A stretch of DNA of 64,000 bases, from sequence record OR836606.1; one strand, written 5' to 3'. How positions within the stretch are numbered: position 1 is the stretch's first letter; every line of letters starts with the position of its first letter. A model generated the notes under the pieces. It worked only from the letters and a program-made list of their open reading frames with translations. It ran no database searches and had not been told where the DNA came from. The position numbers were made by a program, and so were the translations under genes. This document shows positions 10,434 to 39,888 of the stretch, piece after piece.

Positions 10434-11144
10434 TTAAATGAAAGTATTTTTTACTTTCTCTTTCTTAACTATATTCTGAAATTCTTTTTCGTCTATGAAA
10501 TCTAAATTATGTGTTAACATTAGTGAGTAAGTGAATGCATTAAATATAGTACTATTTATATAATAATCTTCTCCTAATTCTAATATTATTCTTAATATAG
10601 ATATTGGATCTTCATCATATAAATTTCTAATTTTTATTTTTATTGGTTTATTATTTCTAGTTTTACTCTTTTTAATAGTAAATACTTTTGTATATTTATC
10701 CCTTATATAATTTATTTCTTTATGAATGTCTTTTATTAAAATATTAGCTTGTTTTCTTTGTTTTTCATTACTACTTATGAATTCCAATTCTAAATCTAAT
10801 TGATGTCTTGTTTCTTCTAGACTTTTATATTCGCTATTAGAAATATCTAATAAATTTTTCTTTATATAGTGTATATTTAGTATATCATTAGAAATATATT
10901 TATTCAATAAACCATTATAACTACCTGGCAAAGAATCTATTAAATCTACAATAGTACTAGGTTTTATTTCTGTTTTAAGATATACGAATTTATCATCCTT
11001 AAATTGATACTTATCGAATACATTAAATACTTTAGGAATTCTTAAATATACATATTCATGATACCTATACAAGCTATTGAGTTGTTTAAAACCTAAAGGT
11101 ATAACTTTATCTCCTAATAATTCTTTATTAGCTGAAATCTTCAT
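10434..11144 (-). CDS. Hypothetical protein, EKEYK..F tail family
   Basis: ORF ends FIDEKEFQNIVKKEKVKNTFI. Confidence 0.65.
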   Translation of the reverse strand: MKISANKELLGDKVIPLGFKQLNSLYRYHEYVYLRIPKVFNVFDKYQFKDDKFVYLKTEIKPSTIVDLIDSLPGSYNGLLNKYISNDILNIHYIKKNLLDISNSEYKSLEETRHQLDLELEFISSNEKQRKQANILIKDIHKEINYIRDKYTKVFTIKKSKTRNNKPIKIKIRNLYDEDPISILRIILELGEDYYINSTIFNAFTYSLMLTHNLDFIDEKEFQNIVKKEKVKNTFI

Positions 11145-11157
11145 AGTTAATTTCTCC

Positions 11158-11817
11158 TTAAATAAACATCTCTTTTGTCATTATCTTTTTATATTCTTTA
11201 TATGTTATCTCTTCTATAAAATTTCTATGATCCAAAAGAATATTTATTTCTTCATTAAATTTTTTATAATCATCTGCATATACAGATATAGTGTCTATTA
11301 TAAATTCTATTATCTTTATATAATTAATGTAAAATAGATTTTTAATAAATTCATCTATCTTATTTTTATCTATTAAAAATATTAATGTCATATCTAATAC
11401 ATGATTATTGTCTTGATCTAAAGAAACTGATTTTAAAAATTCTAAATTAAGTTCATTAACACTATCTATAAATTCTTTTTCATTTTCAATTAGATCATTA
11501 TAACTTTTTAAACTAAAATACATATTCATTATATATTTATTCTTGGATGATCTACTTATAAAGAATTCTAATTTACTATTAAAGAAATCCATATGTACTA
11601 TTTTCATATTTTCTTGGTTTAGTATTTCAAATACTTTTCCAGCAATATATTTAGATACTAGTTCCATATTATTGATTTCTTCATCAGTATTTATTAAGTA
11701 TATAGATCTATCTTTATCATTGCTATTATTGAATAACATTTTATGACCATTATTAGTCCTTTTATGATAGAAGATATTTACATTCTCTTTGTTAAAACGA
11801 TATAAATAATTATTCAT
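11158..11817 (-). CDS. Hypothetical protein, EKEYK..F tail family
   Basis: ORF ends EITYKEYKKIMTKEMFI. Confidence 0.65.
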   Translation of the reverse strand: MNNYLYRFNKENVNIFYHKRTNNGHKMLFNNSNDKDRSIYLINTDEEINNMELVSKYIAGKVFEILNQENMKIVHMDFFNSKLEFFISRSSKNKYIMNMYFSLKSYNDLIENEKEFIDSVNELNLEFLKSVSLDQDNNHVLDMTLIFLIDKNKIDEFIKNLFYINYIKIIEFIIDTISVYADDYKKFNEEINILLDHRNFIEEITYKEYKKIMTKEMFI

Positions 11818-11892
11818 AAAAGCATCTCATCCATTCTAAAATTATTATATAATAAAAAGTTATTATACAATAATTTAGTGAGATGCTTTTAA

Positions 11893-37294: not shown

Positions 37295-37309
37295 TTTAAA
37301 TTCCCCTTT

Positions 37310-39247
37310 TTATTTAAACATTGTATTTACAATTTCAGCTCTAAAGCTCTTATTTAATTTTTTAGCTTCTTCTGGAAAGTATTTACTTAAATATTCACAT
37401 AAACCATTACAAAAATCTGTAGATGTTAAACGAGTGATATTCATTTTATCATAAGTGATAATAAATTCATTCTTTTCAAAATGATATTTTCCTCCTCTAA
37501 GTTTATCTTTAATGTTATTTACAATAGTTTTTGCAACTTTATTATAATTAATATTAATGACAATATCTATATTTGATTCTTTTAAAAGACCTAAGTTCAA
37601 TCTAGTTTCAAAATATTCATCTAAATCTTTATAATGGTATTTATCAAAATCGATGTCTATATCATAAGTAAAATTTTTAAATATTGAATTAATGATTTCT
37701 GTTTGTTCTTCATAATTATTTGCTTTATTATATAACAAAGGATTTACAATATTTCCCACAGTTAAATCAACTGTATTAATTTTACTTAAACCTTTTTTAT
37801 TGAATATAGTATTAATATTCATTTCTATACCGATTTTAATTACATTATTAATTTCTGTTTCAGATAAAAGATTATTCAGTATAGAATTGTTTTTAGCACT
37901 TTCCATAATTTTCTTTAATTGATTACTAGTTTTGCAAGTTATTAATTTAATTAATAATGTAGATACTTCAAACTCTTTTCTAGTTAGGTTACTTGGATCA
38001 AATAAATATTTATATAAGTATTTATAATATGATTTACCACTAATAATACATCTTTGATTAGTTAAATAAATAAGAGATTTAAAACTTCTAACTTTATTGA
38101 GTCTTTTAAATTTATTTATTTTATTTTTATTTATATATAGATCATCAATATAATGACCTAATAAGATATTTCGATAGTAATTCTTGTTAGATAAATCTGT
38201 AAATCTAATATTTTCATTATTTTCTATTAAAAGTGCATTATCAAGGTTACTCTGTCTATAGCTTTCTACTTCATCATTCATTAAACTTACTAATAGTACA
38301 TTATATTTATATATGCTGTAATTCATTTCCTCTTGTAATTCTTTTTTCAGATTATTATTCATTATAATATATATCATTTCATATAATATATCTTCAAATT
38401 CATTGAAATTCATATCTATTAGTAATTCGAATAAATTTCCATCATTGCCTTTTTTGTAATCTGTATATCTTGGAAATCTTAGATATTCATGCTCATTTGT
38501 TAATTTATCTAATAATTCTTTTAATGTATTTAAATTTTTGTTATCTATTAAATTTTTAATATAATCTCTTATTATATTAATAAAATAATCATGAAGATTT
38601 ATATCTGTATTCTTTATATAAATATTTCTTAAATTATCTTTAGATAAATATAAAAGTTGATAGTACGGAAATATTATGAATTTAGTAAAATCAGTTAATT
38701 TGAGAGGTCTATAAGATTCTTTATTAAATTCAATTCCATTAGCAATATTGTAAGGGGCTATTAAACTATAATAAGATATCGATATATTCTTACTTTTGAA
38801 TAGTTCATTTATAATACTACCTTCTGAATTAATACTATATTTTTTCAAATCAGATTCTAAGGTCATTAAAAGATCTTTATAAAGTTTTTTAGTTTCTTCA
38901 TCTAATTTTCTATTTTCCAATTTATTATTTAAATAATTTATAGAATTTTCGATATTATCTTGACGAGTATCTTTCTTTTCAATTGATTTATTATAAATTT
39001 CAAATACTTCACCATAACTTAAATTTTTCAATGTATATATGACTTCATTAAAAAACATTTCAAATTTTTCTTTAGTTTTATCATCTTTAAAATCAAATAT
39101 TTTATCAATTTTTAATTTATCATTTTTAAAATACTTAAAGTTATCTTTTATATAAAAATTTAATTTATAATTTTCCATTATCCAATTCATCTCCTTATTT
39201 ATAAAAAATAAAACAATATATGAGACAATGATCATTAACTTGAACAT
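37310..39247 (-). CDS. Large hypothetical protein, tail family (weak)
   Basis: Likely start near 39180 after AAGGAG; ends FRAEIVNTMFK. Confidence 0.6.
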   Translation of the reverse strand: MFKLMIIVSYIVLFFINKEMNWIMENYKLNFYIKDNFKYFKNDKLKIDKIFDFKDDKTKEKFEMFFNEVIYTLKNLSYGEVFEIYNKSIEKKDTRQDNIENSINYLNNKLENRKLDEETKKLYKDLLMTLESDLKKYSINSEGSIINELFKSKNISISYYSLIAPYNIANGIEFNKESYRPLKLTDFTKFIIFPYYQLLYLSKDNLRNIYIKNTDINLHDYFINIIRDYIKNLIDNKNLNTLKELLDKLTNEHEYLRFPRYTDYKKGNDGNLFELLIDMNFNEFEDILYEMIYIIMNNNLKKELQEEMNYSIYKYNVLLVSLMNDEVESYRQSNLDNALLIENNENIRFTDLSNKNYYRNILLGHYIDDLYINKNKINKFKRLNKVRSFKSLIYLTNQRCIISGKSYYKYLYKYLFDPSNLTRKEFEVSTLLIKLITCKTSNQLKKIMESAKNNSILNNLLSETEINNVIKIGIEMNINTIFNKKGLSKINTVDLTVGNIVNPLLYNKANNYEEQTEIINSIFKNFTYDIDIDFDKYHYKDLDEYFETRLNLGLLKESNIDIVININYNKVAKTIVNNIKDKLRGGKYHFEKNEFIITYDKMNITRLTSTDFCNGLCEYLSKYFPEEAKKLNKSFRAEIVNTMFK

Positions 39248-39297
39248 TGTCTCATATTTATAATATATACTTATTACTGATTTTAACTTAAGAATAA

Positions 39298-39888
39298 TTA
39301 TGAAAAATTATCTTTTACAAATAAATTATTTAACTCTTTAAATAATTTATCAATATTACTTTCTTTATGTGAAGTTAATAAAACTTCTTTTAAAGATTCT
39401 TTAAATTGATTTAATGATAACTGTTTCCATTCCCCTTTAATATTTATATAAGCTGAATGATTTCCAGTATTATACCTTTTATATTCTTCATAGAATGAAT
39501 TAGCTGCCTTTTTATAAGTTAATATATTAATCATAGGAAGAGAATCAATTTTATCCATAAAGAAATAATATAAAGGCGTAACTTCATTTTCTGTATATAT
39601 CAAGTGATCAATAGTATTTACTAATTCTTTTATAGTTATAACTTCACTTGTCTCTTTTGTATTTAAAGATATATCTTCTAAGTTTAAATAATCAATTTCC
39701 ACTTCTTCATCTTCCTTTTCAATTGACATTAGCGTTTCTTTACTATAATGATAGTTAAAACCAGAGTTATGGGATGTGTTATTTTTATTAATTTCAAATT
39801 GATCAAATCTTTTCTTTAAATATTCATTACCCTTTAAATATTCATTAGCCTTTAAATATTCATTATAATCAGAATAAATTTTAAACAC
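39298..39888 (-). CDS. Hypothetical protein, tail family (weak)
   Basis: Ends ELNNLFVKDNFS. Confidence 0.55.
   Translation of the reverse strand: MFKIYSDYNEYLKANEYLKGNEYLKKRFDQFEINKNNTSHNSGFNYHYSKETLMSIEKEDEEVEIDYLNLEDISLNTKETSEVITIKELVNTIDHLIYTENEVTPLYYFFMDKIDSLPMINILTYKKAANSFYEEYKRYNTGNHSAYINIKGEWKQLSLNQFKESLKEVLLTSHKESNIDKLFKELNNLFVKDNFS

Follow-up and report, generated by a model that had tools for sequence, protein, structure and literature searches.

Why should a dozen phage proteins with little else in common all end in the same few residues? The question is raised by positions 10434-39888 of the window, the 64,000-nucleotide stretch of DNA analyzed here, which corresponds to bases 1-64000 of the Staphylococcus jumbo phage LY01 (OR836606.1, 258,897 bp; the sequence is identical). 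A first-pass annotation made from the sequence had pointed to a common C-terminal tail on about 12 otherwise dissimilar proteins of this region. The tail is borne out and is larger in scale than was claimed, with 17 strong bearers in LY01. It is real, strictly terminal, conserved at the protein level and restricted to a clade of ten S. aureus jumbo phages (LY01, S6, PALS_2, DC4, MarsHill, Madawaska, Machias, PB50, AH12 and SA1). The proteins that bear it are not virion components, and nearly all of them are absent from phage particles. We read the tail as the retained C-terminal handle of a diversifying multigene superfamily, which would dock its bearers to one partner, and we give this reading about an even chance of being correct.

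The terminal motif and its bearers

A 16-column scoring matrix was made from seven tails and scanned over 71,934 positions in 286 LY01 open reading frames (ORFs). The seven best matches other than the seeds are further LY01 proteins encoded outside the window, and each of them lies at offset 0 from the stop. With the refined matrix, all positions scoring above 9 bits are at offset 0, both in LY01 and in the 50-kb regions of SA1, PB50 and S6. A gapped hidden Markov model (HMM) of the tails was applied to C-termini genome-wide, as the first-pass annotation had proposed, and 17 LY01 C-termini outscore the best of 4,081 internal segments of 30 residues. The consensus is [FY]-x-E-[ILV]-[TSD]-E-K-[ED]-[YVI]-K-x-x-h-[VI]-K-x-[NS]-F-K-COOH, and the conserved terminal piece is 16-20 amino acids long. 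Of 59 tails, 58 have Phe as the penultimate residue and 43 have Lys as the last. Among about 60 members, no strong bearer extends beyond F-x. The strong bearers span 74-285 amino acids, while weak ones reach 645-688.

All eight tails that had been called strong (10434, 11158, 11893, 12731, 13310, 15792, 32239 and 36740) are present at the ends of their minus-strand ORFs. The four weaker ones (31528, 35991, 37310 and 39298) hold as a class, since weak tail-like ends are in excess in LY01 (12 were observed where internal positions would give 1.6, the number of weak bearers being threshold-dependent), but at ranks 19-29 of 286 none of the four is significant individually. Their orthologues in S6, PB50 and SA1 retain a [VI]-x-x-x-F-x-COOH ending, and because these endings are kept the four are probably degenerate members of the tail class. 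The ending KELTFK of the DNA ligase (32749) was also considered as a tail and was rejected; it is unconserved in relatives and scores at background. The features of the region are as follows, each gene being named by its low coordinate.

10434-11144, minus strand: bearer, 236 amino acids, with a 4-residue insertion in the tail and the ending F-I; HMM score 15.8 bits, above every internal segment; orthologues retain the variant ending
11158-11817, minus strand: bearer, 219 amino acids, ending F-I; its body is better conserved than any other of the set, at 75-98% identity in relatives
11893-12723, minus strand: bearer, 276 amino acids as the longest ORF (the record start at 12711 gives 272); found by matrix, HMM and tail profile
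12731-13261, minus strand: bearer, 176 amino acids; found by matrix, HMM and tail profile
13277-13306, minus strand, in the gap separating 12731 from 13310: 30 nt left over from a bearer gene that was deleted
13310-13921, minus strand: bearer, 203 amino acids, with an N-terminal aromatic hairpin motif; linked by BLAST to the ligase-side bearers of about 150 residues in relatives
15792-16250, minus strand: bearer, 152 amino acids, with the N-terminal hairpin motif; the tail is modelled as a strand (134-137) and a helix (139-151) at a predicted local distance difference test (pLDDT) score of 70-75
31528-32193, minus strand: weak, degenerate tail ending L-F-N; rank 25 of 286; ending kept in S6, SA1 and PB50
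32239-32712, minus strand: bearer, 157 amino acids as an ORF; the only LY01 bearer beside the DNA ligase, where relatives have 4-6 more
35991-36725, minus strand: weak, degenerate tail ending Y-F-K; rank 26 of 286; ending kept in orthologues
36740-37294, minus strand: bearer, 184 amino acids, without the N-terminal motif; modelled as all-helical; the SA1 orthologue is ORF58
37310-39247, minus strand: weak, degenerate tail ending M-F-K on a 645-residue protein; rank 29 of 286; ending kept in orthologues
39298-39888, minus strand: weak, degenerate tail ending V-K-D-N-F-S; rank 19 of 286; ending kept in orthologues

The remnant at 13277-13306 consists of the first codons of a bearer gene followed almost directly, in a different frame, by its last seven codons (N-F-K-stop), and S6 and DC4 have an intact gene at this place. 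The strong bearers outside the window are 168964, 169779, 170575, 171301, 172112, 174752, 175407, 185713 and 196560. Bearer genes form co-directional tandem arrays among the genes of the non-virion RNA polymerase, primase, ligase and recombinase, with an SbcC-like gene adjoining. Their products are mostly soluble and acidic, and aromatic residues are frequent (14% versus 10.5%). The window has a G+C content of about 24%. Nearly all of its genes from 9.7 kb onward are on the minus strand, so that the stop codons of the bearers fall at low coordinates. The sole plus-strand gene of the stretch lies at 30298-30600; its counterpart on L034, a contig from the European Nucleotide Archive (ENA), carries a Pfam note by which the product is a short HU-like (Bac_DNA_binding) protein.

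The tail profile makes 16 matches in LY01, 11 in SA1, 24 in PB50, 29 in S6 and 28 in DC4, and bearers amount to 6-10% of the proteome in the clade phages. The clade is distantly related to Bacillus AR9/PBS1. Judged by RNA polymerase, its next relatives are Listeria LPJP1, Bacillus AR9 and BpSp, and Yersinia phiR1-37, and the tail profile has no match in any of them. A strict DNA pattern of the tail, which catches two LY01 tails and one to four per region of its kin, matches none of 2.9 million IMG/VR contigs; in 185,579 prokaryote species genomes (one each) it makes a single out-of-frame chance match in a Gracilibacteria DNA polymerase gene. The full-length proteins are equally confined. Protein 11893 has four representatives in 1.84 billion proteins, all of the Staphylococcus clade. 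Matches of 10434, 11158 and 11893 in tblastn are confined to the ten clade phages, and a profile of 15792, 13310 and the array matches solely this clade. A word-based protein search with 15792 returns its own cluster and one other at 84% identity. ESM Atlas gives no match for 11893, whose own model there has a pLDDT of 0.32. No Pfam family scores above cut-off for the 12 window bearers, 10 other LY01 bearers or 15 array members; PHROGs has no match for any bearer, and a sequence profile search of the PDB with the array family finds none. With the ligase as bait, no related contig was found in IMG/VR and only a single relative of 2.8 kb in the Joint Genome Institute (JGI) metagenomes.

A conserved gene end could also reflect a signal in DNA or RNA, for instance if the ends of genes overlapped with a promoter, a terminator or a coupling signal. 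The genes are tightly packed, and in the trio 168964, 169779 and 170575 (LY01 168950-170761) the final 63 nt are 88-93% identical as DNA, with a sharp boundary and unrelated flanks. However, the tail codons differ at the first position in conservative ways (I/L/V, T/S/D, K/R) and also show synonymous changes, and the DNA past the tail stops is unconserved, with a nearby ribosome-binding site at one extreme and a long spacer at the other. These two observations place the constraint on the protein. Sharing of the same codon among tails is only slightly above the codon-bias expectation (781 versus 700), and the identity within the trio is about what amino-acid identity and codon bias together would give. 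A nucleic-acid signal is thus scarcely credible as the cause. Gene conversion within the trio was considered as well; it is compatible with the identity, but the same expectation already accounts for it.

Particles, replication compartment and proteolysis

The first-pass annotation took the tail for a sorting or docking signal, serving capsid loading or ejection, localization to the phage DNA compartment, or a common adaptor or protease. The first two uses are disfavoured by the evidence below, while a common adaptor or partner stands as a possibility. As a signal for capsid loading or ejection, the tail would carry cargo into the prohead. Short terminal peptides on unrelated cargo are known for shells of the HK97 fold, and one bearer is indeed found with particles. 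Liquid chromatography-tandem mass spectrometry of SA1 particles detected 52 proteins, including 11 described as 'virion-unrelated' (PMC9096886 Table S2). Of about 19 SA1 bearers, the detected set contains one, ORF58, the orthologue of 36740. The other 18 or so were undetected, even though the 11 virion-unrelated proteins were seen. The DC4 virion list, which is sparse, names no bearer of this region; UFVDC4_00153, a membrane protein, has no tail. The bearer genes also lie in replication and transcription blocks, outside the head and tail modules.

An address label for the phage replication compartment would be attractive as a linear signal, the import signals of nucleus-forming jumbo phages being unknown. 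Against this, PALS_2 has served as a chimallin-less representative with multisubunit RNA polymerases (preprint 10.1101/2023.02.24.529968), and AR9-like phages lie outside Chimalliviridae (PMC13282480). LY01 has no match to Pfam Tubulin, in a search that was positive in 13 of 14 control genomes. With one of about 19 bearers in SA1 particles, and with neither chimallin nor tubulin, loading into the capsid is very unlikely and targeting to a compartment has a similarly slight probability.

ClpX recognizes short C-terminal peptides. The tail could accordingly be a C-terminal degron or adaptor tag that is read by a host AAA+ protease of the ClpXP/ClpCP type or by a phage protease, either for timed removal of early proteins or for delivery of the bodies' targets to the protease. 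This would be a special case of docking. The strictly C-terminal position, where the hydrophobic-basic ending leaves the carboxylate free, suits such a role, and the bearers are probably early and non-virion. The degrons and adaptor tails that ClpX reads (the ssrA tag, the MuA end and the SspB tail) are likewise short peptides that work only at the very C-terminus. However, the LY01 tail has no sequence likeness to them, being unlike endings of the ssrA type (L-A-A), of MuA or of the SspB type, and the phyletic pattern is unhelpful for finding a phage-encoded reader, with the tail confined to ten phages. A role in proteolysis is a candidate that we consider improbable.

Docking or one diverged fold

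As a docking handle, the tail would attach every bearer to one shared partner, which could be a conserved protein of the phage itself or a hub of the host. That would leave the variable bodies to act on different targets, which early in infection are probably functions or defences of the host. In their arrays the bearer genes multiply, shrink, fuse and are lost, and their bodies diverge past recognition, while the last 20 or so residues stay fixed as a predicted short strand and an amphipathic, Lys-rich helix ending in Phe-Lys-COOH. Docking would act in trans, and the diversification would be that of an arms race. We prefer this reading because the motif ends about 60 proteins to the residue, because the aromatic anchor adjoins the free carboxylate and because the tail outlasts the bodies, all of them traits of peptides recognized at the C-terminus. 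A bolder version makes the tail a virus-encoded address code, a linear C-terminal signal that is read in trans by one receptor, either a host hub or a phage protein, and is present on as many as one in ten of the proteins; this is possible, though we hold it with less than even confidence.

The difference between tail and body is seen in the rates of change. The mean identity of orthologous bearers is 54% for the tail, compared with 31% for the body, and tails across different families are 39% identical. Bearers of LY01 are 25-45% identical to those of PB50 or SA1, with 11158 (75-77%) as the exception, whereas in the same phage pairs the ligase is 90-95% identical and the non-virion RNA polymerase subunits are 83-98% identical. 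By these comparisons the bearers are among the fastest-evolving genes.

The arrays change in copy number too. The ligase-side array has six units of about 150 residues in S6 and in PB50, five in Logan contig L033, four to five in SA1, and none in LY01 or ENA contig L034. Among phages with 90-96% identical ligases, this looks like a gene accordion. In DC4, UFVDC4_00167 (L032 19866-20759) joins two units of about 150 residues as one ORF of 297 residues. The last five tail codons and the stop of the first unit are altered there, and the units are separate in Logan contig L033; the joined gene may be a genuine fusion or a sequencing error. SA1 (L007 14542-14997) has a second body of the 32239 family with a shortened and decayed tail that ends three residues past Y-F-K, which shows that an intact body can lose its tail.

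The alternative named by the first-pass annotation is ordinary deep paralogy. All bearers would descend from a single ancestor, and the tail together with an N-terminal hairpin would form a structural clasp that closes the fold, with no partner in trans. Several families do connect. BLAST links the 13310 family with the array of about 150-residue units, the array profile aligns 15792 orthologues end to end at E ~0.003, and 13310, the array and 15792 are collinear in their N-terminal aromatic hairpin, acidic motif inside the body and tail. Judged by these alignments, some bearer families are related to each other. A loose N-terminal aromatic pattern, picked post hoc, is more frequent in bearers (6 of 17, versus 11 of 224), and a strict N-terminal matrix shows weak enrichment in bearers (p = 0.03). 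Tandem arrays with changing copy number are typical of duplication.

When the last 20 residues are removed, however, hhalign and jackhmmer leave at least nine families and eight singletons unjoined, and at least 15 body groups have no link to one another. Deep paralogy is thus partly borne out, by the linked 13310, array and 15792 families. The wide spread of lengths among strong and weak bearers also counts against a single fold, as does the 36740 family, which lacks the N-terminal motif and is modelled, at low confidence, as all-helical against the alpha/beta 15792. A structural element, moreover, seldom must end some 60 proteins to the residue. We infer common descent of all bearers, and docking and deep paralogy are mutually compatible. 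Paralogy with a clasp and nothing more is a serious possibility, to which we assign well under an even chance.

Structures were predicted with AlphaFold2 (AF2) from shallow alignments, which comprised window proteins, search hits and Logan contig L033, and the models are weak. The model of 36740 has a mean pLDDT of 62 and is all-helical, and its tail helix (residues 165-180) is the best-predicted part, with pLDDT 82-87. For 15792 the mean pLDDT is 46; values of about 70-75 are reached only at the N-terminal hairpin (strands 2-8 and 11-17) and at the C-terminal strand and helix. In both models the tail is predicted as an alpha-helix after a short strand or turn, and no part of either is predicted with more confidence. 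A Foldseek search of the PDB with the 36740 model gives no match. Complex prediction of 15792 residues 1-36 with tail residues 118-152 gives a score of 0.16, the mark being 0.32, and speaks neither for nor against an interaction between them.

Expression early in infection is suggested by the gene neighbourhood and by three promoter cores. The core of the AR9-type early promoter, TATATTAT (preprint 10.1101/2020.12.14.422802), is located 38-70 nt upstream of 13310, 172112 and 175407. These cores point only weakly to early expression of the bearers, because the 8-mer shows no enrichment genome-wide (150 found, about 225 expected by composition).

Several observations weigh against docking, the missing promoter enrichment among them. 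The partner is putative. No sign of phage-specific co-evolution with a receptor is seen across all the tails of one phage. Instead, tail variants are specific to families and are inherited with their bodies, as paralogy would have it. In the 15792 model, the sole other confident segment besides the tail is the N-terminal hairpin, and this fits a tail that packs onto its own protein. The joint prediction of hairpin and tail and the family-wise inheritance of tails keep the structural reading alive. The tail could be just the best-preserved part of one fold, and there is a real chance that the tail class is merely a diverged family of paralogues.

Implications and known systems

The phages of this clade are candidate therapeutics and generalized transducers of S. 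aureus, and nearly all of their genes are annotated as 'hypothetical'. One signature of 20 residues unites 6-10% of these genes into a class with the fastest turnover in the genome, and such turnover usually marks genes that act at the host interface. Should the tail prove to be a docking handle, a peptide bait could expose the hub, and the bodies would offer a natural library of molecules that bind or inhibit staphylococcal functions. If the address code were true, no proteome-wide short linear docking signal would have been described in a bacteriophage before it, and the 20-residue peptide on its own could serve directly as bait for the hub that the clade exploits. A structural clasp alone would still make a clear phage case of a scaffold with a hypervariable insert. 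In the DNA of S6, uracil has been shown to replace thymine, and MarsHill-like phages are presumed to be the same (preprint 10.1101/2020.12.14.422802). A recognizable uracil-DNA glycosylase inhibitor is reported to be lacking in Staphylococcus jumbo phages with uracil-DNA (PMC10303552); as a speculation, small acidic bearers are candidates for this function.

We found no earlier description of the tail. The genome papers of MarsHill, DC4 and SA1 and a comparative survey of jumbo phages mention no such family or motif, and term searches of preprint 10.1101/2020.12.14.422802 and PMC10303552 did not turn up the tail motif.

The tail resembles several known arrangements in principle and belongs to none of them. 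Bacillus phage G carries about 35 copies of a Zn-ribbon as a lineage-specific expansion (PMC7824862). This is similar in that a small module has expanded to tens of copies in one lineage, but in phage G the whole small domain repeats, whereas the tail bearers keep the terminal 20 or so residues, sometimes with the N-terminal hairpin, and differ in their bodies. The cargo-loading peptides of encapsulins and the capsid-targeting sequence of T4 are also short terminal peptides on otherwise unrelated proteins. Their bearers enter the shell, unlike the 18 of about 19 SA1 bearers that were undetected in particles, and the T4 signal is N-terminal and cleaved, while the tail is C-terminal in every case. 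The C-terminal tip of single-stranded DNA-binding protein (SSB) and the clamp-binding peptides are strictly C-terminal docking handles with an invariant aromatic anchor near the free carboxylate, which is the arrangement proposed here. They are, however, acidic (of the D-D-D-I-P-F type) or Q-L-x-L-F-like and occur on one or a few replication proteins. The tail is Lys-rich with a penultimate Phe and the ending F-K, its 59-tail consensus contains no such pentapeptide, and it is carried by 6-10% of the proteome.

In poxviruses, the ankyrin/PRANC proteins have a C-terminal F-box-like piece, which folds as a domain of some 50 residues and has eukaryotic Skp1 as its binding partner. The LY01 tail has no sequence relation to it; it is about 20 residues long, its host is bacterial and its partner is putative. 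The working principle would nevertheless be the same, with fast-evolving, lineage-specific paralogues that combine variable bodies with a conserved C-terminal piece docking to a host hub.

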